Below the pieces are notes generated by a model. The model was given only the letters and a program-made list of their open reading frames with translations. It searched no databases and was not told where the DNA came from. 15,087 nucleotides of DNA from Vitrella brassicaformis CCMP3155 (Eukaryota > Protista > Chromerida), in contig CDMY01000858.1 in the NCBI GenBank assembly GCA_001179505.1, positions 1 through 15,087 on the forward strand. Direction: 5' to 3'. The translations under genes were made by a program, and so were the position numbers. The stretch's first letter is position 1, and each line of letters starts with the position of its first letter. Shown here piece by piece: positions 935 to 15,087 of the stretch.

Positions 935-3900
935 NNNNNNNNNNNNNNNNNNNNNNNNNNNNNNNNNNNNNNNNNNNNNNNNNNNNNNNNNNNNNNNNNN
1001 NNNNNNNNNNNNNNNNNNNNNNNNNNNNNNNNNNNNNNNNNNNNNNNNNNNNNNNNNNNNNNNNNNNNNNNNNNNNNNNNNNNNNNNNNNNNNNNNNNNN
1101 NNNNNNNNNNNNNNNNNNNNNNNNNNNNNNNNNNNNNNNNNNNNNNNNNNNNNNNNNNNNNNNNNNNNNNNNNNNNNNNNNNNNNNNNNNNNNNNNNNNN
1201 NNNNNNNNNNNNNNNNNNNNNNNNNNNNNNNNNNTGGCACCGCACCCGCTGGAGCTTCATGGCCTCCACGTCGCTCGCGCGCTGCAGCACTACTGCGCCA
1301 GCACCCTCGCCCCTCACATAGCCGTTGGCCTTGGCGTCAAATGTCTGACACTTGCAGTCAGGCGAGAGCATGCGTGCCTTGCAGAGCGCAATGAAGACGT
1401 GGGGCGAGAGCATGAGATTAACACCTCCCACCAGGGCACCGCGGCACGCCCCCATGCGCGTGTTCTTGACTGCCGCGTCCATGGCGACGAGGGACGACGA
1501 GCAGGCTGTGTCGATGGTCATGGAGGGACCCTTGAGACCAAACACATAGGACAGGCGGTTCGAGACGATGCTGCTGGCGCCGCCTGTTCCAGCGTAGCTG
1601 CTGCTCTTGTCGGTCAAGTCGATGAAGTTCCAGTCTTGGTTGCAGCACCCAATGACCACAGCCAGGTCCTGACCGATGAGTTTCTCGCGGCTGAGGCCCG
1701 CGCTGTGGAAGGCCTCGTAGCCCACTTCAAGCATCAGCCGCTGCTGGGGGTCCATGCAGTTGACCTCAGCGGGGCCGATGTTGAAGAAGGCGTTGTCGAA
1801 CATGTCGGCCGCCTCCATGAAGGCCGCCTTTCGCGTGTAGCACTTGCCCTTGGCATCGGGGTCGGCGTCGTAGACCTCGTCGACATTCCAGCGGGTCAGC
1901 GGCACCTCGTCGACACAGTCGGTCTTGTCCATGAGCATCGACCAGAAGGACGAGGGGGTTGTCACCCCGCCGGGCAGGCGGCACGACACGCCAACCACAG
2001 CCAGGCTCTCAGACATGGCCACAGGCAACGGCCCACCCCACTCGTCCACAGCGGCCGCCTGGTCCAGCCCCCGGAGATCTCAGTGCAGATGAAGTCAATG
2101 ATGGCGTTGAGCGTCGGGTAGTCGAAGAGAGTGGTGGCGGGCAGCTTGACGCCGATCTTGGAGGACAGGGCGTTGCGGAATTCGACGGCGCCGAGTGAGT
2201 CAATGCCCAGCTCTCGGAGGGGCGAGTCCAGAGGAGGTGCAGTGATGTCGACCACTTCCTGTCCTAACACACCAGCCGCCGACTCAACTACCACCGACTG
2301 GATGTAAGATCGCAGCTGTGATGGACTCAGGCCGCTGATGTCCGCCGTTGGAGTTCGTCCTGTCTTTTCTCCTGCAGGCGGCGTCCTTCCCGTCTGACTG
2401 GTTCGCTGCACTCTCAAGACGTGTCGGGCGCCTGGCGAGAGCGACGAGCTCAGGGACACTTGCAGCGCTTCAGCGAGGAAGCAGGCATCCAGTTGAAGCA
2501 GCGAGGCATCCCATCGAACGAGAGCCGATCGATGAGAGGGCTTGGCCTTCAGAGTGCGGCTGAGAGTCTCAACCAGAGGCGAAGAAGGGAGAGTGTGGGA
2601 TTCTGCGGCCTTTCCCAATGCCTCGAGGGTGACGACGGTCGATTCAGGAGCTTGGGCCTGCACGGTCTCAACCAATGATCGAGCCCGGATGAGCTGCTGA
2701 TCGTCGTCCTCTGCTGACTGTCCATTCATTACGCAGAGACACCGCGTGATGGGTGGCCCCTCCCTCTTGGCCAATGCTCCACACCACAACATATCTCCAC
2801 ATCGGATNNNNNNNNNNNNNNNNNNNNNNNNNNNNNNNNNNNNNNNNNNNNNNNNNNNNNNNNNNNNNNNNNNNNNNNNNNNNNNNNNNNNNNNNNNNNN
2901 NNNNNNNNNNNNNNNNNNNNNNNNNNNNNNNNNNNNNNNNNNNNNNNNNNNNNNNNNNNNNNNNNNNNNNNNNNNNNNNNNNNNNNNNNNNNNNNNNNNN
3001 NNNNNNNNNNNNNNNNNNNNNNNNNNNNNNNNNNNNNNNNNNNNNNNNNNNNNNNNNNNNNNNNNNNNNNNNNNNNNNNNNNNNNNNNNNNNNNNNNNNN
3101 NNNNNNNAGGGGTAGTCGAAGAGAGTGGTGGCGGGCAGCTTGACGCCGATCTTGGAGGACAGGGCATTTCTGAACTCAATGGCGCCGAGTGAGTCAATGC
3201 CCAGCTCTCGGAGGGGCGAGTCCAGAGGAGGTGCAGTGATGTCGACCACTTCCTGTCCTAACACACCAGCCGCCGACTCAACTACCACCGACTGGATGTA
3301 AGATCGCAGTTGTGATGGACTCAGGCCGCTGATGTCCGCCGTTGGAGTTCGTCCTGTCTCTTCTCCTGCAGGCGGCGTCCTTTCCGTCTGACTGGTTCGC
3401 TGCACTCTCAAGACGTGTCGGGCGCCTGGCGAGGGCGACGAGCTCAGGGACACTTGCAGCGCTTCAGTGAGGAAGCAGGCATCCAGTTGAAGCAGCGAGG
3501 CATCCCATCGAACGAGAGCCGATCGATGAGAGGGCTTGGCCTTCAGAGTGCGGCTGAGAGCCTCAACCAGAGGCGAAGAAGGGAGAGTGTGGGATTCTGC
3601 GGTAAACTTGCCCAATGCCTCGAGGGTGACGACGGTCGATTCAGGGGCTTGGGCCTGCACGGTCTCAACCAATGATCGAGCCCGGATCAGCTGCTGATCA
3701 TCGTCCTCTGCTGACTGTCCATTCACTACGCAGAGACACCGCGTGATGGGTGGCCCCTCCCTCTTGGCCAATGCTTCACACCACAACATATCTCCACATC
3801 GGATGCCGCGATCTCGTGCATCGTATCGCAGCCTCCTGGCGGTCACGCGGATGCCGTCAGACAGGTGAGTCACCCACGCGGCCAGATTGGCAGGAGGCGG

Positions 3901-6900
3901 TCCCCATGAGGCAACGACGAGGGTCTTGCATCCCTGCTGAATGAGGGCTTGAGCTGCTGCCAAGGCAATAACCTCCACATCACCGCACACCAGGACGCAT
4001 TGACTCCTTGAGATCACGACAGGGCTGGACGGCAGGGGTCTCGGGACAGCAACGACGCTGTCCGCTGCGTTGCGCACGACCATGACACTCTGATGTCCGA
4101 AGAGGCCCTCGCTAGGAGTTGCGTACTCCAAGACGAATCCCGTGTCGTGGAAGGCCCTTTGCCATCCGGACTGGGGCAGAAGAGGACCGTCACGCCGCAG
4201 GTCCGAGTCAATAAAGCGCCACCAGCCCTCGAGCAGGCCGAATGTCGTCTGGAGCATGAAGGTCTGCTGCGTCAGCTCCGATATGATGAGAAGGCCGTCA
4301 GGCTTAAGGGACGCCTTCACGTTGCGCAGCGTTCGACGGAGGTCTTGTGTGGCATGCAGCACGTTGACGGCAATCGCCAGGTCGAAGATGCCTGTCGCAA
4401 TGCCGCTGTGACGGGGATCCCTCTCGACGTCGAACAGGCAGTATTCAACGTTGGGGTAGTCGACGAATCGCTTGGCAGCGTTGCGCAGGAAGTACTCGCT
4501 TATGTCCGTGAAGAAGTAGGTCGTGCGGCGGGCATCCAGCTTGGGCAGGACGCAAGAGGTCGTGCCACCAGTGCCAGCGCCCACCTCGCAGATGTGCATT
4601 CGCCGTGCGCCACTTGACAGCCGATGTCTGCATATTGCGTCGGTGACCTCCATAATCACACCGTTGCTGAACTGTGCTGGGATGGTGTCTTGGTACATGG
4701 CGGTCGCCAAGTCCATNNNNNNNNNNNNNNNNNNNNNNNNNNNNNNNNNNNNNNNNNNNNNNNNNNNNNNNNNNNNNNNNNNNNNNNNNNNNNNNNNNNN
4801 NNNNNNNNNNNNNNNNNNNNNNNNNNNNNNNNNNNNNNNNNNNNNNNNNNNNNNNNNNNNNNNNNNNNNNNNNNNNNNNNNNNNNNNNNNNNNNNNNNNN
4901 NNNNNNNNNNNNNNNNNNNNNNNNNNNNNNNNNNNNNNNNNNNNNNNNNNNNNNNNNNNNNNNNNNNNNNNNNNNNNNNNNNNNNNNNNNNNNNNNNNNN
5001 NNNNNNNNNNNNNNNNAGCAACGACGCTGTCCGCTGCGTTGCGCACGACCATGACACTCTGATGTCCGAAGAGGCCCTCGCTAGGAGTTGCGTACTCCAA
5101 GACGAATCCCGTGTCGTGGAAGGCCCTTTGCCATCCGGACTGGGGCAGAAGAGGACCGTCACGCCGCAGGTCCGAGTCAATAAAGCGCCACCAGCCCTCG
5201 AGCAGGCCGAATGTCGTCTGGAGCATGAAGGTCTGCTGCGTCAGCTCCGATATGATGAGAAGGCCGTCAGGCTTAAGGGACGCCTTCACGTTGCGCAGCG
5301 TTCGACGGAGGTCTTGTGTGGCATGCAGCACGTTGACGGCAATCGCCAGGTCGAAGATGCCTGTCGCAATGCCGCTGTGACGGGGATCCCTCTCGACGTC
5401 GAACAGGCAGTACTCAACGTTGGGGTAGTCGACGAATCGCTTGGCAGCGTTGCGCAGGAAGTACTCGCTTATGTCCGTGAAGAAGTAGGTCGTGCGGCGG
5501 GCATCCAGCTTGGGCAGGACGCAAGAGGTCGTGCCACCAGTGCCAGCGCCCACCTCGCAGATGTGCATTCGCCGTGCGCCACTTGACAGCCGATGTCTGC
5601 ATATTGCGTCGGTGACCTCCATAATCACACCGTTGCTGAACTGTGCTGGGATGGTGTCTTGGTACATGGCGGTCGCCAAGTCCATGGACCCTCCAGGGAA
5701 GATGAGCTCCAATGCATCGACGCCACCCTTCAGGACTTCGACCAGCTTAGGTGCGCAAGCGTGCGCGAGGCTGGCCTCGTGAGACACTTGCTGTGGAGCG
5801 TTCTCGAGTGATAACTTCGGACTCTGCGGAACAGCGTCCCCATCGGAGCCCCGCAGAGCGTCGATGAGGCACTGATACAGCTTACGCTGATGTGGATGGA
5901 CCACATCAGCTTCTCGGACAGCCTTGATGGCCGACTCACAGTATGCACGACACGCCTCCTCGACGTGCACAAATCCATCAGCCCACTGCCGTGCTTCATC
6001 CGACTCCATCGCATGCTGAATAGAGGCAGACAGGTGCTCACTCAGGGACAGTGGAGGCAATGAAACATCCACAGCACCAGCGGGAGCACCTCGACCGATT
6101 CGAAGGACAACAATCTCATCACTGTCCACTCCCCTCTTCTCCAATGATTCTGACAGGCGGTAAGTGTCTTCCACGTCCTCTTCACAAACCGTCACGCGAG
6201 CATCTGCGGTGACACTGTCAAGCAGCATGCGAAGCCCATGTCTGTCTCCAGCCGCCTGGCGCCCGAGATTCCGCCTGGATGCTTCGAGATAGCCGACGAG
6301 TGTCCAGCTGCTCTCTGACGGCGTCCCAGTGGTATCGATGCGCTTCACAAGGCGTGCATCCGTAACGGCCCTGTCCGCTCTAATCTGTTGTGCAGCATCC
6401 TCAAGCCAGCCAGCCGCCGTGTCGCCAACTTTCAGGTGTGAAACGGCATCTCCGACCTCCGCAACAATGCCGCCGCATGCCAACGGACCAGCCAGGCGAT
6501 CATCGGCGTCTTGTGCAGAGGGCGGAAGGGCCAGTGCATGGATGCACATCACCACTTGGTGCGCTGATGGTGAGGAAGCTGGTGTGCTGCTGTGTGCCAC
6601 CTGCCAATCGTTTGCCCACTTGACGTGCACTCCCTTGCCTGAGGATGTCCTTGTGTCCGACAGGAGGGCAGCTGGGAACAGGTCGATGGACAGAGGGATG
6701 TCCCTCAATGTCCGACACTNNNNNNNNNNNNNNNNNNNNNNNNNNNNNNNNNNNNNNNNNNNNNNNNNNNNNNNNNNNNNNNNNNNNNNNNNNNNNNNNN
6801 NNNNNNNNNNNNNNNNNNNNNNNNNNNNNNNNNNNNNNNNNNNNNNNNNNNNNNNNNNNNNNNNNNNNNNNNNNNNNNNNNNNNNNNNNNNNNNNNNNNN

Positions 6901-9900
6901 NNNNNNNNNNNNNNNNNNNNNNNNNNNNNNNNNNNNNNNNNNNNNNNNNNNNNNNNNNNNNNNNNNNNNNNNNNNNNNNNNNNNNNNNNNNNNNNNNNNN
7001 NNNNNNNNNNNNNNNNNNNGCCCATGCCAATTCGGACCCAGCGGGTCCGTCTTGCGTCTTCGAGACCATGATGCTGATGACCGTGCACGTCACTGAGGCA
7101 GTCGCTGCGAGGGATGGAGGCGTCCCGATGAAATCCAGCGACCGGATGGGGCACTTTGCGGCATCATCACCGCCCTCGAGACTCTTGAATGAGAGGAAGC
7201 TGTCGTAAGAGGGCTCATCACCATCAGGCTTATCGACCAACACGAGAACCCCCACAGGCATATCAGGACCCGAAGACCTCAGCGCTTTCAAAAAGGCGCA
7301 AAGCTGCTCCCTCTGATGCGCTGCATCCTCCGCCTGATGACGACATCGATGCACTAGAACGACCCCTCCTGGTGTGTCACGGAGACGCCTCGCTGCATTT
7401 GCCAGTGCCTCCACGCTCGAACACACTTCGGCATGCTTGAGGCCTTCCCCGTGCCCGAGAGCACCATAGAGCTCTGCAGCCCCGTGAGTCAACAGGACCG
7501 CCACACAGTCCAGAGCCGTTGTCATTGCCTCGCGGCTGATGGGATCCTCCAACGGGGCCCAGCCCTCTTCACACAGAGCTGTGCGAGCCAAGAAAGGTCC
7601 GCCGGCCTTTGACCTGGCTTCCTTGACCTCCAAACAGGAGAAGAAGGGCGTGCGGGGGATGACACGGAAGTAGGTCTCGAAACGAATGGGCTGGCAGCCG
7701 ATGACGTCGATGGTTGCGATGTGAGCCTGGACGGCCCAGAGGCTCCGAAGGCCGATGTCATTGGTGACGGCAGCGAAGCCCATCTTCTCGAGCTGTCGTT
7801 GAGTGACGAGCTGTGCCGCCTTGCCTTGCTCTGTCCAGGCGCCCCACTGGATGCTGGAGCCCGCGAGGCCCTGGGATCGTCGGTATGTCACCAGAGCATC
7901 GAGGCATGCGTTTGCTGCTGCATGGTTCGCTTGGCCGAAGTTGCCCAGCAGGCCAGCAATGGACGAGAAGACCAGGAAGGTGTCGGCCTGCACGCCGCTC
8001 TCAATCAGTAGGTCGTGGAAGGCCCAGGCGCCCTGGACTTTGGGGCCGTAGACATCTGCTATGGTCTCGAGCGTCTGACTGCCGATGGTTGCGTCACTCA
8101 GTGTGCCAGCAGCATGAAGGATCGCCTTGGGCACCAGCCCCTCCCCTTGGACTTGCGTGAGCAGGGCGCGGCAGTCCTCGATGGAGCTCAGGTCACACTT
8201 GGCTGCACGCAAAGTGATGCACGACCCCTCCGTCGCTTCGGCTCTCTGCATGATGGTCTCGAGCCGCTGCCATTCTTTGCTCTCCTGCATCTCCTGAGTT
8301 GGTTGGCCTCGTCGCGATGCAAGGATGATGCTCCTGGCCCCATGCTCAATCAGCCATGCAGCCACCACGAGACCAAGGCCGCCAAGACCGCCAGTGATCA
8401 CGTACGCATAAGGGCAACTCCGTGCACGCTTCTCCGTCGCTCGTGCCTCGATCACCTCGAACCCCGGAGCAGAGGGCACGGTGAGCACAATCTTGCCGAT
8501 GTGGAGCGCTCGCTGCATGAAGGTGAAGGCTGCTGAGACCCCTTCGTCCTCGTCGCTGAGATCGAAGGCGTGAATGGGGGGAGGGGTGAGCTGGTCCGTC
8601 GCGATCATGCAGTTGATGCGGTTCAGCATGCCGCGGAACCACACAGGGTCGTCACGAATCATGACGTCGAGAGCAACGGCTTCATAGTTGACGTCGGTGC
8701 GCTCTTGAGCCATCTTCTCCCGGCTCCAGATGCCTCGCTTGCCGATCTCTACGAACCATCCACCGGGACGCAGCAGCGCCAAAGAGAAGCCGATGAAGTG
8801 ACCGCTGAGGCACTTCAAGACGACATCGAACCGACCTTCGTTTCCCAGGAACGATTGCATATCCGACTGGAAGCGATGCGGGTCTCCTGGGCTTGTGGTG
8901 TACTGGATGCCTAGATGTCGCAGGAGGGTCCTCTTGCGATCGCTGCCTGCCGTCGCGTAGACGATGGCTCCTGCCCTGATGCAGTGCTGCACAGCAGTCA
9001 AGCCGACTCCGCCACTCGCAGCGTGGATCAGCACCGGGTCGCCAGCCTTGACGTCTGCGACGTCTCGAAGGCAGACCTCCACCGTGCCGACGATTATCGG
9101 CAGCCCAGCAGCTGCAGCGAAGGATATGTTGGGCGGCTTCAAGACCACTGGCCCAGCGGCTCTGGTCGTGACGTAGGTCTTGAGGCACCCACTGATGACA
9201 CCATACACCTCATCCCCCACTTTGAAGGAGGTATTTTCATCGCCGGCAATGCGTGTGACCGTCCCACTGCACTCTCCCCCGGCATCAACCGACACTCTTT
9301 CAGCAGACGCATAAGCGCCGAGCACCAGCAGGAAATCGCGAAAGTTGAGACCCGCGGCCCTCACGCGAATCTCCATCTCTCCGGGGGCCAGCTCTCTCCG
9401 ATCCTCAGGAGCTTGAGCGCGCAATTTCAGCATGCTCTTGAGCGATCCTCGGCCAGACAGCTCCAGCTCAACGGGCCCTCGCGCCACAAGGGAGCTCTTA
9501 GTCAGTCGACGCGCGTAGATAACGTCGGCGCGCACGGCAATTTCCGTCTCTTCCTCAGTCCTGAGCCGTGATGAGTTGGCCGCGACGCAAAGCAGCTGGT
9601 CCTCCCAGCTTGCCGAACTCGGTCCATCTAAATCCACAGTCACGAGGCGAGCTGCATCCTGCCGCTCGAGCCTCGCGCTTCGCAGCATGCCCCAGATGCC
9701 CGCATGGACGGGTCGTCCCACGGCGGGGTCACGGGCGTGCATCCTGTGGATGGTGGACGTGAAGAAGAGGGCACCGCTGTTGTGTTGCGACCCCGAGTCG
9801 CCGCCAATGAGGGCTGCTGCCACTTGCATGGCCCCCAGGAGAACGTGCTGCGCATCAACGTCCGAGCTCAGTCCAAGTAGACACATGACCGTCTCCCCTC

Positions 9901-12900
9901 GTCCCTCCGCGAGCAACGTGTCGATATCCTCCTTGATACTAGGCTTGGAAGACCAATCCCACCACACGACACCAGCAGCTGGCGCTTTCAGGCCTCTCTC
10001 GATTGCAGCCACGAGGGTCTCCTGGGACCTCTCGGCCACAATGATCGGCCGCATATCTTGCTCAGTGAGTGCATCAGACTCCAATGTGAGATGCGGGATC
10101 CACTTGGTCTCCCACAACTCACCATCTGCTTCGAAGAGCGACAGCTCCCGCGGACGTAGCTTCTCGATAAATGCGGCCTCCATCTGGCGCAGGCTGACGT
10201 TCTTCAGGTAGGCGGCCATGCGGCCCCTGCTGTCCTGAATGACCACATCGATGGTGGCAGCACGGTCCCCGCGCTTCAGCNNNNNNNNNNNNNNNNNNNN
10301 NNNNNNNNNNNNNNNNNNNNNNNNNNNNNNNNNNNNNNNNNNNNNNNNNNNNNNNNNNNNNNNNNNNNNNNNNNNNNNNNNNNNNNNNNNNNNNNNNNNN
10401 NNNNNNNNNNNNNNNNNNNNNNNNNNNNNNNNNNNNNNNNNNNNNNNNNNNNNNNNNNNNNNNNNNNNNNNNNNNNNNNNNNNNNNNNNNNNNNNNNNNN
10501 NNNNNNNNNNNNNNNNNNNNNNNNNNNNNNNNNNNNNNNNNNNNNNNNNNNNNNNNNNNNNNNNNNNNNNNNNNNNNNNNCCATACACCTCATCCCCCAC
10601 TTTGAAGGAGGTATTTTCATCGCCGGCAATGCGTGTGACCGTCCCACTGCACTCTCCCCCGGCATCAACCGACACTCTTTCAGCAGACGCACAAGCGCCG
10701 AGCACCAGCAGGAGATCGCGAAAGTTGAGACCCGCGGCCCTCACGCGAATCTCCATCTCTCCGGGGGCCAGCTCTCTCCGATCCTCAGGAGCTTGAGCGC
10801 GCAATTTCAGCATGCTCTTGAGCGATCCTCGGCCAGACAGCTCCAGCTCAACGGGCCCTCGCGCCACAAGGGAGCTCTTAGTCAGCCGATGCGCGTAGAT
10901 AACGTCGGCGCGCACGGCAATTTCCGTCTCTTCCTCATTCATGAACCGTGATGAGCTGGCCGCGACGCAAAGCAGCTGGTCCTCCCAGCTTGCCGAACTC
11001 GGTCCATCTAAATCCACAGTCACGAGGCGAGCTGCATCCTGCCGCTCGAGCCTCGCGCTTCGCAGCATGCCCCAGATGCCCGCATGGACGGGTCGTCCCA
11101 CGGCGGGGTCACGGGCGTGCATCCTGTGGATGGTGGACGTGAAGAAGAGGGCACCGCTGTTGTGTTGCGAGCCCGAGTCGCCGTCAATGAGGGCTGCTGC
11201 CACTTGCATGGCCCCCAGAAGAACGTGCTGCGCATCAACGTCCGAGGTCAGTCCAAGCAGACACATGACCGTCTGCCCTCGTCCCTCCGCGAGCAACGTG
11301 TCGATATCCTCCTTGACACTAGGCGCGGAAGACCCATCCCACCACACGACACCAGCAGCTGGCGCTTTCAGGCCTCTCTCGATTGCAGCCACGAGGGTCT
11401 CCTGGGACCTCTCGGCCACAATGATCGGCCGCATATCTTGCTCAGTGGTTGCATCGGAGTCCAATGTGAGATGCGGGATCCACTTGGTCTCCCACAATTC
11501 ACCATCTGCTTTGTGGATCGACATCTCCCTCAAAACTAGCTTCTCGATAGATGCGGCCTCCATCTGCCGCAGGCTGACGTTTTTGAGGCACGCGGCCATG
11601 CGGCCCCTGCTGTCCTGAATGACCACATCGATGGTGGCAGCACGGTCCCCGCGCTTCAGCAGGCGGGCGTGGCTCCACAGCTCGCTCGACGGGCTCACAC
11701 GCGCCAGTGAGACCCTCTCCACCCCCGCGGGCACCAGAACTGCCTTGGTATTCCCCTTGCCGGACTGATCGGCCGCGAGTACCGCAGCGGCTGACTGCAG
11801 CGCACCGTCTAGGATGGCGGGATGCAGCCGGAAGCCTCCCTCGAATGGCTTGATGGGCGGGTCGAGCTTGAGCAGGGCCAGAGCCTGGTCGTCCGACACC
11901 AACAGCTCCCTCACCGTCTGGAACCTCGGACCGTACGCCAAACCGATCTCCTTGAGCTGCGTGTAGAACTCTGCAACTGGGGCGACCTTGTTGCACCGGT
12001 GTTTGAGGGCCGTGAGGTCCTCCACCAGGTCTCTCTCGCCGTCCCCCGCACCCGCGACCTTGACCAAACGGGCGGTTGCATGCGGCACAAAGCCCTCCTC
12101 GCCTGGCGCCCGCGTGGCGATCTCGACGGCCATGGGGGGCATGGCAGCGTCGGTATCGGTGGTCGGCTGCTTCTCGACGGTGACACGGAGGGTGGGCATC
12201 TTCGGCTCATCCTGTTTGTCGTCAGCTTTGGCCAGCATGAGCGGCCGCTCGAACGACACCTCCTCCAGGTGCACCAGCTCCTCCGCCGATGACGTCTTGG
12301 CGCCCCTCTCCGCCTGCGCAGCCGCCAGGCCTGCACTGGCCATAATGTCAATCCACCCTGCGCCGGGCATCAGAGGCACGCCTGCGTACCAATCAAGACA
12401 TAGAAACACAGCCAGCCACATGATGTGTGCTTCAAGCAGCAAGGAGGTGTGTGTGTGTGCGGTGCGTGGCATACCGAGGACGACATTGTCCTCGATGAGC
12501 GCCTTGAGGTCTTGTCGCAGGGTGGCTTCGAAGGTCAGGCCGATCGGGGTCGTGTGCTGGCGACCGAGCGCAGGATGGGCCGCCTCGACCCACGGAAAGC
12601 TCCGGTGGTTCCACTGGTGAGTGCCCTTGAGCTTGGCGAGGCACGTCGCGACCGTCAGGCTGGCACCGTCCTGGTCGTCCTTGGTGGGGTCCATGGGCGC
12701 CAGCCAATGCAGGTCCATCTCTTGGGCAACGTCTTGCAGGCACTGCTTGCCCATTCCGATAAGTGTGGGCCGTGGGCCAACCTCAACGATCACACGGGCG
12801 CCGGCCTCGACCATGGCTCGCATGCCGTCCATGAAGCGCACGGGGTGGGTGATGTGTTTGGCCCAGTACTCGCCCCGCATGACCTCGTCGCCGGCCACCT

Positions 12901-15087
12901 TGCCGCTGACGTTGGACACCAGGGGGATCTTGGCAGTCTTGAGGTTGACTGTGGACAGCACCTGCTGGAAGGGAGCCACCGTCTCGGCCATGAGCGGCGA
13001 GTGGAAGGCATGTGACACTCTGAGGAGCTTGTAACGGCCCCCCACCTTGAGCGCCTTCATCACGGCCTCGACCTCGCCCCGCTTGCCAGACACCACCACA
13101 CTCTTGGGGCCGTTGACGGCCGCGACAGAGACGGTCTTGGTCTCATATTCTCCCACACTTGCAATGCCCTTGAGCACCTCCTCCTCGCTGAGACGACAGG
13201 CGGCCATGACGCCATCATTCTGTGAAGCGTCGTTCATGATTCGTGCTCGTTCCACGATGAGCTTGAGTCCGTCCTCGAGGCTCATCACGCCGGCGATGGT
13301 GGCGGCCACGTACTCGCCCATGCTGTGGCCCATGACCACATCGGGCGTCACACCACGGCTCCGCAAAAGCTGAGCCAACGAATACTCAACAGCGAAGATC
13401 AGCGGCTGGGAGAACCGAGTCTGGTCGATCATTTCCTGTATTTTGGTCTTGGCCTNNNNNNNNNNNNNNNNNNNNNNNNNNNNNNNNNNNNNNNNNNNNN
13501 NNNNNNNNNNNNNNNNNNNNNNNNNNNNNNNNNNNNNNNNNNNNNNNNNNNNNNNNNNNNNNNNNNNNNNNNNNNNNNNNNNNNNNNNNNNNNNNNNNNN
13601 NNNNNNNNNNNNNNNNNNNNNNNNNNNNNNNNNNNNNNNNNNNNNNNNNNNNNNNNNNNNNNNNNNNNNNNNNNNNNNNNNNNNNNNNNNNNNNNNNNNN
13701 NNNNNNNNNNNNNNNNNNNNNNNNNNNNNNNNNNNNNNNNNNNNNNNNNNNNNNNTCTCTTGGGCAACGTCTTGCAGGCACTGCTTGCCCATTCCGATAA
13801 GTGTGGGCCGTGGGCCAACCTCAACGATCACACGGGCGCCGGCCTCGACCATGGCTCGCATGCCGTCCATGAAGCGCACGGGGTGGGTGATGTGTTTGGC
13901 CCAGTACTCGCCCCGCATGACCTCGTCGCCGGCCACCTTGCCGCTGACGTTGGACACCAGGGGGATCTTGGCAGTCTTGAGGTTGACTGTGGACAGCACC
14001 TGCTGGAAGGGAGCCACCGTCTCGGCCATGAGCGGCGAGTGGAAGGCATGTGACACTCTGAGGAGCTTGTAACGGCCCCCCACCTCAAGCGCCTTCATCA
14101 CGGCCTCGACCTCGCCCCGCTTGCCAGACACCACCACACTCTTGGGGCCGTTGACGGCCGCCACAGAGACGGTCCTGGTCTCATCCTCGCCCACACTTGC
14201 AATGCCCTTGAGCACCTCCTCCTCGCTGAGACGACAGGCGGCCATGACGCCATCATTCTGTGGAGCGTCGTTCATGATTCGTGCTCGTTCCGCGATGAGC
14301 TTGAGTCCGTCCTCGAGGCTCATGACGCCGGCGACCGTGGCGGCCACGTACTCGCCCAGGCTGTGGCCCATGACCACATCGGGCGTCACACCATGGCTCC
14401 GCAAAAGCTGAGCCAACGAGTACTCGACAGCGAAGATCAGCGGCTGCAAGAAACGAGTCTGGTCGATCACTTCCTGCATTTTGGTCTTGTCCTGGTCGGT
14501 CTTGGGGTACAGGATGCCTGTAAGTGGCACAGGCAGCAGCGGATCAAAGACAGTCGCGCACTGGTCGATGCAGCTCCGGAACACCTCCTCGTTGTCATAG
14601 AGCTTGCGCCCCATGTCGACGTACTGGGAACCCTGCCCGGTGAACATGAACCCGATCTTGTTCTGCAGCGCCGCCGACCCACTGTCCTCGTTGAGCATCT
14701 CATCGATCTGCGCGGCACTGAGCGCCTTGGTCTCCACCAGGATATGAGCATTGGCGCCACCGAATCCGAATGAGCTGACGCCGCCGACCATGCAGTCCTT
14801 GCCCGGCAGACCGGACACCAGTGGCACTGGCTCGGTGGGGAAGACCACTGGGAAGGCGTCGTTCATCGCTAAGTAGGAGTTCAGCTGAGTGAAGTGCAGA
14901 TTGGGGGCCGCGCAGCCGTGCAGGAGCGTCATGATGAGCTTCGCGAGACCCGCTATGCCCGCGGATCCCTCCAAGTGGCCGATATTGGTCTTGAGTGCAC
15001 CCAGCACAAGAGGATTCTTGTCACTGCGGCCAGGGCCGAACACAGCCTTCAGGGCGCCGAACTCGATGGGGTCGCCGAGAGAAGTGC
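2..15087 (-). CDS. Giant modular cis-AT type I polyketide synthase, partial at both ends; fragmented by six assembly gaps, one intron and one frameshift
   Basis: Ordered PKS motifs on the minus strand across the whole window: GTSLGDPIE, KTNIGHLEG, SSFGFGG (KS); GQGSQ, GHSLG, HAFH (AT); HPALG, DGALQ (DH); LNFRD, HAASGGVG (ER); TGGLGGLG (KR); EVGAGTGG, NVLHAT (MT); GIDSL (ACP); DPQQR, DTACSSS (KS). Confidence 0.97.
935..1234. other. Assembly gap (300 N) within KS; hides the first catalytic His of HGTGT
   Basis: N run; flanks are not duplicated. Confidence 1.
1235..2070 (-). CDS. PKS segment: ACP-KS linker and N-terminal two-thirds of the next ketosynthase
   Basis: ESLAVVGVSCRLPGG, FDNAFF, MDPQQRLMLE, GPSMTIDTACSSS (active Cys at 1501-1503), ANGYVRGEGAG. 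Confidence 0.96.
2070..2807 (-). CDS. PKS segment: second copy of relic-KR tail and complete ACP
   Basis: [44 protein letters not shown]. The phosphopantetheine attachment Ser is at 2196-2198. Confidence 0.95.
2116..3804. repeat. Gap-flanking duplication 2116-2807 / 3110-3804 (relic KR tail and ACP)
   Basis: About 690 bp, about 20 substitutions plus one 3-nt indel (LGKAAE vs LGKFTAE). Confidence 0.92.
2808..3107. other. Assembly gap (300 N), duplicated flanks
   Basis: N run. Confidence 1.
3108..4716 (-). CDS. PKS segment: duplicated MT core, relic KR Rossmann-like region, ACP
   Basis: EVGAGTGG (4564-4587), NVLHAT (4348-4365), VLVCGDVEVIALAAAQALIQQGCKTLVVASW (KR-like, glycines lost), [13 protein letters not shown] (3184-3201), [10 protein letters not shown]. 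Confidence 0.92.
4048..5685. repeat. Gap-flanking duplication 4048-4716 / 5017-5685 (MT core)
   Basis: 669 bp, offset 969, one synonymous mismatch seen (4444 T vs 5413 C). Confidence 0.93.
4717..5016. other. Assembly gap (300 N), duplicated flanks
   Basis: N run. Confidence 1.
5017..6719 (-). CDS. PKS segment: relic ER N-terminal region followed by a SAM-dependent C-methyltransferase
   Basis: ACGGIVAEVGDAVSHLKVGD resembles the ER GroES-like segment. MT motifs: EVGAGTGG (5533-5556), YFFTDIS, FDVERDP, NVLHAT (5317-5334), FGLLEGWW. Confidence 0.9.
6720..7019. other. Assembly gap (300 N) between relic psiKR and relic ER
   Basis: N run; flanks are not duplicated. Confidence 1.
7020..10280 (-). 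CDS. PKS segment: duplicated DH end and psiKR, complete enoylreductase (about 9470-8480), ketoreductase (about 8410-7690), then a degenerate psiKR-like region
   Basis: ER: LNFRD, HAASGGVG (9002-9025), GWFVEIGKR, HIGKIVL. KR: YVITGGLGGLG (about 8372-8400), HAAGTLSD, PKVQGA, SSIAGLLGNFGQANHAAAN. Confidence 0.95.
9201..11660. repeat. Gap-flanking duplication 9201-10280 / 10581-11660 (DH end, psiKR, ER start)
   Basis: 1080 bp, offset 1380, about 39 mismatches, no indels. Confidence 0.93.
10281..10580. other. Assembly gap (300 N), duplicated flanks
   Basis: N run. Confidence 1.
10581..13455 (-). CDS. PKS segment: second copy of AT C-terminal part, dehydratase (DH, with intron), structural psiKR, ER N-terminal part
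   Basis: GHSMG (13316-13330), HAFH (13001-13012), HPALG (about 12577), GLAYGPRF, HPAILDGALQ, VWGML-like GIWGMLRSARLE (psiKR), AAGLNFRD and GECSG (ER). Confidence 0.95.
12382..12474 (-). other. Spliceosomal intron, 93 nt, phase 1, in frame and stop-free, inside the DH active-site motif
   Basis: Minus strand reads ...GTCCTCG|GTATGCCACGCACCGCACACACACACACC...TCTTGATTGGTACGCAG|GCGTGCCT... It has a GT donor, a CAG acceptor and a (CA)6 tract. Removing it deletes 31 aa (MPRTAHTHTSLLLEAHIMWLAVFLCLDWYAG) and restores the DH motif spacing N-VVL-G-VPLM-P. Confidence 0.9.
12447..12459 (+). repeat. (GT)6 microsatellite inside the intron
   Basis: GTGTGTGTGTGTG read directly; the only such tract I saw in the window. 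Confidence 0.85.
12718..14493. repeat. Gap-flanking duplication 12718-13455 / 13756-14493 (AT C-terminal part)
   Basis: 738 bp, offset 1038, about 22 mismatches, all within 13046-13455. Confidence 0.93.
13456..13755. other. Assembly gap (300 N), duplicated flanks
   Basis: N run. Confidence 1.
13756..15087 (-). CDS. PKS segment: KS C-terminal part and complete acyltransferase (AT), malonyl-CoA type
   Basis: TSLGDPIE...KTNIGHLEGSAG...GVSSFGFGGANAH, then IGFMFTGQGSQY, GHSLG (14354-14368), conserved Arg (IAERARIM), HAFH (14039-14050). The frame is open to the window edge. Confidence 0.96.
14161..15087. repeat. Direct repeat of 1-927 (KS-AT)
   Basis: Same alignment as for 1-927. Confidence 0.95.

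Follow-up and report, generated by a model that had tools for sequence, protein, structure and literature searches.

How does a polyketide synthase module come to hold more than a thousand residues, a methyltransferase among them, between its ketoreductase and its acyl carrier protein? The question is raised by contig CDMY01000858.1 of Vitrella brassicaformis CCMP3155 (assembly GCA_001179505.1; 72.7 Mb in 1,064 contigs), a stretch of 15,087 nt that we analyzed as a whole and refer to as the window, in which all domains of a polyketide synthase (PKS) gene lie on the minus strand. The original prediction for this locus was that the module carries a second, decayed reductive loop with a live methyltransferase (MT) inside it, in the layout KS-AT-DH-psiKR-ER-KR-[psiKR*-ER*-MT-KR*]-ACP (KS, ketosynthase; AT, acyltransferase; DH, dehydratase; KR, ketoreductase; psiKR, its structural subdomain; ER, enoylreductase; ACP, acyl carrier protein; asterisks mark the decayed copies). 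The observation is confirmed: a long stretch that bears an MT and echoes the first loop lies between the KR and the ACP. We consider it probable that the layout describes the module correctly, and the interpretation is largely supported, strongly for ER*, moderately for KR* and weakly for psiKR*.

The stretch between the ketoreductase and the carrier protein

With KS, AT and ACP accompanied by the optional DH, ER and KR domains, the Pfam matches are those of an extension module of a modular type I PKS or fatty acid synthase (FAS). KS-AT-DH-ER-KR runs across 13757-15085, 10583-13453 and 7022-10279, an MT is matched in 5017-6717 and again in 3109-4716, and an ACP and the next KS-AT follow; along the pieces that the assembly gaps leave, the order reads KS(C)-AT, AT-DH-ER(N), ER-KR, MT, MT-ACP, ACP, KS and KS(C)-AT. 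Between the end of the KR, near 7830, and the first position of the ACP match, 3283, there are, once scaffolding duplicates are removed, 269 + 12 + 567 + 254 or about 1,102 residues (1,101 in the gap-free paralog C685), in agreement with the predicted run of over 1,000 residues without an ACP.

We divided this stretch into four segments, X, Y, the MT with its N-terminal lid, and Z (Table 1), proposed to be psiKR*, ER*, MT and KR*, and compared them with profiles drawn from 120 listed synthases (61 canonical psiKR segments lying between an MT and an ER or KR, 34 ERs and 83 KRs). The alignments of the second loop are shallow, comprising four paralogs (the window, C685, C236 and C496), and the equally shallow profile-profile comparisons within the genome are weak. 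Between the two loops, the two best BLASTP matches are collinear (E 0.024 and 0.044) and coincide with parallels that the original prediction had drawn, one at the start of the KR and one at an ER strand. A word-based search with the 1,095-residue region returned 138 synthases, all of which matched through the MT only, at 14-38% coverage.

The ER-like character of Y emerges from several comparisons. Against the profile of 34 PKS ERs, hhalign aligns 85 columns (residues 44-133 of Y on ER positions 12-104) with a probability of 95.2% and an E-value of 2.7e-8; psiKR1 of the first loop, run against the psiKR profile as a positive control (three-copy alignment including the window), reached 95.7%. 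In hmmsearch the ER hidden Markov model (HMM) scores Y at 20-21 bits, and the Pfam ADH_N matches, though below threshold, fall at the same profile positions in three paralogs. An exhaustive HMMER search with the X-Y profile over 1.84 billion representatives gave a single protein, P0121, a relative of the medium-chain (MDR) zinc-type alcohol dehydrogenases, with the match (E 5e-4) lying in the GroES-like domain; the library evidently lacks this genome's own proteins, so that absence from other protists is not concluded. Y has no match to ADH_zinc_N, nor to the ER profile beyond about position 104; the nucleotide-binding domain and its GGVG motif are absent, and the MT lid begins about 100 residues past the GroES-like part. 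Without the nucleotide-binding subdomain Y would be a relic rather than an ER, and these profile similarities argue strongly that it is the GroES-like stump of one.

Z, of about 250 residues, is best described as a second KR-like Rossmann domain. Its AlphaFold2 model shows six to seven strands in the beta-alpha-beta order of a Rossmann fold (predicted TM-score, pTM, 0.55; predicted local distance difference test, pLDDT, 60-85 over residues 14-145). The top match of an exhaustive VIA structure search was 8G7W, a modular PKS reducing region (Z-score 11.7 over 169 residues), and KR catalytic subdomains of PKSs and FASs were reached at Z-scores of 10-11.7 over about 170 residues. For human FAS, insect FAS, a MAS-like PKS, LovB and the KRs of the bacillaene, macrolactin and phoslactomycin synthases, it is the catalytic subdomain of the KR, rather than the structural one, to which Z aligns. 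All ten of the best named language-model clusters are PF08659 KR, with lead-level scores of 0.82-0.84. The NADPH-binding glycines have been lost, as was claimed: TGxxGxxG is absent from Z, which reads VLVCGDVEVIAL at 3961-3996, with CGDVEVIAL where KR1 of the first loop has TGGLGGLGL, and relative to KR1 the Ser, Tyr and Asn positions are missing as well, there being no equivalents of SS..G or YAAAN. Fold and neighbors together point, with moderate confidence and through a predicted model, to a relic of the KR catalytic subdomain with the fold of a short-chain dehydrogenase/reductase (SDR).

Several results weigh against this assignment. Ordinary SDRs tie with KRs in VIA Z-score, Foldseek of the model against the PDB returns generic Rossmann matches only (E ~1e-3, TM-score 0.3-0.44), model confidence is only moderate, the KR and psiKR HMMs give no signal on Z, and hhalign matches Z equally weakly to psiKR (E 0.0017, 103 columns) and to KR (E 0.0032, 44 columns), each score lying above all 60 shuffles. 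The marginally better score against psiKR is one of the points in favor of a different reading, in which two modules were fused, the MT and Z form the canonical cis-AT pair MT-psiKR, and the loop is psiKR*-ER*-MT-psiKR. The MT is indeed closest to cis-AT CurJ-type MTs (42-43% identity), a BLASTP alignment to P0033 extends from the MT into the psiKR of P0033, opposite Z, and SpnB_Rossmann appears in some language-model clusters. However, the psiKR profile also picks up KR1, with comparable strength (E 6.6e-4), and the Rossmann sheet in the model of Z is complete, with six to seven strands. In each of the two-subdomain KR structures listed, VIA places Z on the catalytic half, over 146-187 residues, and inspection by eye shows Z running collinear with KR1 as far as the WG.W strand. 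This reading of Z is therefore unlikely, and we retain the description of Z as KR*.

X, about 190 residues long, may be a degenerate psiKR, an assignment that we hold weakly. It aligns collinearly with the psiKR profile over 159 columns in hhalign (E 0.004, probability 8.5%), a score reached by none of 60 column shuffles, and gives E 0.17 against ER and 0.13 against KR. The columns VVLV, the strand PVxxLVLV, SLDFIG and SE.AWAYRDG.LLAPRE fall on the hallmark motifs WlvT, IDLd and E.qvA.R.g.R.v.RL, so that CPIRSLDFIG and ELAW, originally put forward as counterparts of the first loop, do lie on canonical psiKR motifs; X also starts with a W-x-P motif, as psiKR1 does. On the other side of the balance, a psiKR HMM search of X gives no signal, and AlphaFold2 of X-Y (445 residues, five-row alignment) returned a mean pLDDT of 33, a model that was unusable and was kept out of the fold search. 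Of the profile and fold matches that the original prediction had proposed to look for, ADH_N/ER similarity was thus found for Y and an SDR fold for Z, whereas X yielded a weak psiKR profile match only. A co-fold of X with Z (score 0.15, mark 0.34) is evidence in neither direction.

These doubts about X bear on a second alternative, namely that Y alone is a domain remnant, that X and Z have no relation to KR and are linker or docking domains specific to the lineage, and that no whole loop was duplicated. The silence of the HMM searches on X and Z and the unusable model of X would fit such a history, as would the lack of X relatives in the exhaustive search and a language-model search in which X led to unrelated alpha/beta domains at low scores. 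It is harder to reconcile with a collinear match of X to psiKR over its full length, terminal motifs included, above all shuffles, with the SDR fold and the KR-only language-model neighbors of Z, with the order X-Y-Z, which equals psiKR-ER-KR, and with the W-x-P motif that opens X as it opens psiKR1. We regard it as quite improbable and continue with X, Y and Z as the remains of one loop.

The MT in the midst of these remnants looks catalytically live. It carries the S-adenosylmethionine (SAM) motif VGAGTGG (5533-5553), and NVLHAT (5317-5334) and LLEGWW (5188-5205) supply a His and a Glu that we take to be the catalytic dyad of PKS C-methyltransferases (C-MTs). SAM motif, His and Glu are identical to those of CurJ in the alignment, in keeping with the intact MT that had been described. 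Seven solved structures match at E 0.001 or better, every one of them a methyltransferase; they include the PKS C-MTs of DisA, the citrinin PKS and LovB as well as that of CurJ, the best solved relative.

Estimated from C685 versus C236 and from C685 versus the window, dN/dS in X, Y and Z (bootstrap upper limits 0.47-0.59) lies above that of the catalytic domains (0.14-0.28; 0.14-0.25 for ER1, KR1, the MT core, ACP and KS) and below that of the linker behind KR1, so that the three segments are relaxed but not neutral and are being kept. Such purifying selection fits a scaffold role. A third alternative is that the second loop has kept reductase activity, with Y or Z binding NAD(P)H non-canonically and compensating for a lesion in KR1. 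The first-loop KR had been called normal-looking, which holds for its TGGLGGLG motif but not for its catalytic Tyr: in an alignment to solved KRs, the Tyr of the YAAAN motif is replaced by His (codon CAT, 7922-7924 on the minus strand), a change shared by the four double-loop modules examined (the window, C685, C236 and C496), whereas 17 other KRs of the genome have Tyr. Compensation could thus be needed wherever the double loop occurs, and Z is conserved (dN/dS 0.34-0.41). Yet Z is without glycine-rich motif, Ser, Tyr and Asn, Y is without the whole nucleotide-binding domain, and KR1 still has the cofactor motif as well as Lys, Ser and Asn, at a dN/dS of 0.19-0.25, all of which makes a live second loop very hard to sustain beside a dead one.

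Assembly gaps and the order of the domains

The window contains six gaps, each of exactly 300 N, and each piece between them is open in one minus-strand frame. By blastn, contig ends flanking the gaps overlap over 738 bases at 97.0%, 1,080 at 96.4%, 669 at 99.85% and 695 at 96.8% identity; only gaps 6720-7019 and 935-1234 are without flanking overlap. The 669-base overlap is the repeat of both flanks across gap 4717-5016, from which it follows that the second MT of the window is a scaffolding duplicate and that the module has one MT, as do the gap-free paralogs.

Gap 6720-7019, which the original prediction had singled out for closure, is bridged by Logan contigs from three public runs, in which 6719 is joined to 7020 by 32 letters. 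Together with two partial codons these make 12 in-frame codons, and the junction reads ...GSELAW-AYRDGALLAPRE-CRTLRD...; the identical 12 residues occur at the junction in C685, C236 and C496, each within one open gap-free stretch, and these 12 are all that the window is without at this gap when aligned to the gap-free paralogs. Closed at 12 codons, the gap hides nothing larger, and no ACP-KS-AT lies there. The gap-free open frames of C685 (3,206 residues) and C236 (2,342 residues) run in the order ER, KR, about 660 residues, MT, about 280 residues, ACP and KS with no gap and no stop, and in C496, the closest paralog, one contig piece runs from the end of the KR to the MT lid, so that the domain order is common to four paralogous modules.

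An assembly artefact, in which the MT and its flanks stem from another module or a mis-joined contig and the gap conceals an ACP-KS-AT, could draw on the six gaps, on contig ends that overlap at only 96-97% and on a gap that is unspanned inside the window, but is barely credible in view of independent public contigs that bridge this gap with 32 in-frame bases, two gap-free paralogs with the same order in single frames and a third that bridges the junction. What does count against the window as a faithful copy of one module is that its scaffold joins contig ends only 96-97% identical and may be a mixture of paralogs or haplotypes; even so, the order is the same in the gap-free paralogs.

The joins in question are those at gaps 13456-13755, 10281-10580 and 2808-3107, where the flanking ends share overlaps of 695-1,080 bases whose identity is only 96-97%. 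The KS-AT of the next module, at 1-934, is 94% identical to that of the present module at 14163-15087; successive pieces of the scaffold may come from different, near-identical paralogous modules or haplotypes. In the ACP-KS linker (about 1965-2079, minus strand) a run of five G coincides with a one-base shift of the frame, whereas C685 and C236 keep ACP and KS in one frame. An indel of the assembly or a small intron is the probable cause.

Comparison with known synthases and a possible role

Among the 120 listed MT-bearing synthases two orders occur, cis-AT MT-(ER)-KR-ACP and trans-AT KR-MT-ACP, the canonical cases counted being 32 MT-ER-KR and 29 MT-KR. The premise of the original prediction that a C-MT precedes ER and KR in a single loop therefore stands for cis-AT modules and fungal highly reducing PKSs, but it overlooked the trans-AT PKSs, which routinely place the MT between KR and ACP, though with no additional loop. 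The architecture had not been recognised, and here the survey agrees: an ER, full or partial, within 500 residues upstream of the MT was found in none of the 120, and the layout was found in no paper searched. MT-bearing synthases of Vitrella and Chromera are mentioned in papers on chromerid and algal PKSs, in which the double-loop layout is not described (PMC7464705, PMC4661987, PMC5029157). An MT at the ER insertion site between KR halves is thus a position met neither among the synthases surveyed nor in the papers searched.

Fully reducing cis-AT and iterative modules with a C-MT (CurJ, LovB, Dictyostelium PKS) have the same domain types and likewise place the ER between the structural and catalytic subdomains of the KR. 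They run KS-AT-DH-MT-psiKR-ER-KR-ACP, however, with the MT before the psiKR and one loop, whereas the present MT follows a complete psiKR-ER-KR and would lie inside a second, dead loop in the place of an ER core. Trans-AT modules of the rhizoxin, patellazole and bacillaene type, KS-(DH)-KR-MT-ACP, top the match list of the region and share an MT between KR and ACP, but the Vitrella module differs in its cis AT, its ER stump and its second Rossmann domain, and in its spacing: KR to MT spans 33-118 residues and MT to ACP fewer than 65 in the trans-AT modules, compared with 521 and 251 here by the same measure.

Retention of dead domains has precedents. The modifying region of animal FAS (2VZ8/2VZ9) keeps a pseudo-methyltransferase and a pseudo-KR and has its KR split by the ER; as in the present module, dead relics are kept as structural parts, but in animal FAS the MT is dead and the loop live, whereas here the extra loop is dead, the MT seemingly live and the loops are two. 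The inactive ER (ER0) of LovB-type fungal highly reducing PKSs (7CPX, among the structure matches of both the MT and Z) is similarly an inactive ER-derived region kept within a KR-split loop. LovB has a full-length ER fold, a live KR and a single loop, in contrast to the GroES-like stump seen here, with the MT in place of the rest.

These features suggest how the module might work. The AT, with its GHSMG and malonyl-type HAFH motifs, would load malonate, and since the motif is malonyl-type a methyl branch would have to come from the MT. The dead loop could act as a rigid scaffold that holds the MT beside the ACP, where it would methylate the alpha-carbon of the beta-ketoacyl-ACP using SAM, and the first loop would then reduce the chain to a methyl-branched acyl unit. 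The most likely origin of the second loop is either a tandem duplication of psiKR-ER-KR or the fusion of two modules in which ACP-KS-AT-DH was lost; the MT would then have replaced the ER core, and the redox residues would have decayed. This scheme is weakened by the possibility that the first loop is itself impaired, as may be judged from the Tyr-to-His change of the KR in all copies and a His-to-Asn change of the DH in the window copy. A further idea, which we offer as speculation and think unlikely to be right, is that the dead loop and the Tyr-to-His KR co-evolved as a timing device, the MT being parked by the carrier while a weakened KR buys time, so that methylation precedes reduction. 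If true, the device would be a built-in answer to the competition between MT and KR that programs methyl branching, and a natural template for grafting MTs at the ER site of engineered synthases.

On the probable reading of a second, dead loop, a PKS can duplicate its modifying region in tandem and reuse the second copy as the frame for another catalytic domain. As the mirror image of animal FAS with its dead MT, the module would bear on how pseudo-domains arise and why they are kept; to engineers it suggests that domain swaps may be tolerated at the ER slot. In chromerid and apicomplexan lipid biology, it points to methyl-branched lipids or polyketides with SAM-derived branches from a malonyl-specific module, and a Tyr-to-His KR that accompanies the double loop presents SDR catalysis with an oddity open to testing.

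Feature coordinates and further observations

Table 1. Features of the module and its two loops in the window, listed in the order of the minus strand, with the support for each and dN/dS where estimated.
Feature	Position	Strand	Support	dN/dS
psiKR1, KR structural subdomain of the first loop	9494..10087	-	profile of 61 canonical psiKR segments, 35-36 bits on C685 and C236	
ER1, enoylreductase, NADPH-binding motif HAASGGVG	8444..9427	-	Pfam ADH_N, ADH_zinc_N, ADH_zinc_N_2	0.17
KR1, ketoreductase, TGGLGGLG motif	7664..8443	-	Pfam KR E 2.2e-52	0.19-0.25
Linker from KR1 to the second loop, fast-evolving	7571..7663	-	39% amino acid identity between paralogs	0.74
X (psiKR*), probable remnant of a KR structural subdomain, ~190 residues	7022..7570, through gap to 6718	-	hhalign against psiKR	0.31-0.48
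Assembly gap, true length 32 bases, in frame	6720..7019		with flanking bases encodes AYRDGALLAPRE, the end of X	
Y (ER*), GroES-like N-terminal part of an ER, with ~100 further unassigned residues	6052..6717, homologous core ~6334-6594	-	hhalign, hmmsearch, Pfam ADH_N below threshold	0.35-0.39
MT, C-methyltransferase with N-terminal helical lid	5017..6051	-	Pfam Methyltransf_12/23/11/25; CurJ C-MT 5THY E 8.6e-54	0.18-0.23
Scaffolding duplicate of 5017-5685 (C-terminal part of the MT)	4048..4716	-	blastn 669 bases, 99.85%	
Z (KR*), SDR/KR-like Rossmann domain, ~250 residues	3289..4047	-	AlphaFold2, VIA, language-model clusters, hhalign	0.34-0.41
ACP, GIDSL at 3181-3201	3109..3283	-	Pfam PP-binding; cut by gap 2808-3107, repeated in 1965-2807 (overlap 695 bases, 96.8%)	

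The DH of the window has an in-frame insert of 93 bases with GT...AG ends (12380-12472, minus strand) that is likely an intron. After splicing, its motif reads NxxxGxxxxP, with Asn (AAT, 12485-12487) at the position of the catalytic His, and the closest paralog, C496, has His; either a true inactivation or an error in the base call could lie behind the change.

Elsewhere in the genome, the module that follows the ACP in C685 (C685:7254-16871, residues 2017-2817 of the open frame) passes directly from KS to DH and has no AT, whereas the next module of the window has one. Another synthase of the genome (C791:103385-104545) shows the canonical order MT-psiKR-KR: directly behind a distant MT (26% identity) comes a KR that has the normal Tyr.

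Finally, 22-31% of the 31-letter words sampled from 5017-6719 recur in each of several metagenomes of marine sediment, which stem from two studies; this suggests that sediments harbor the alga or a near relative.

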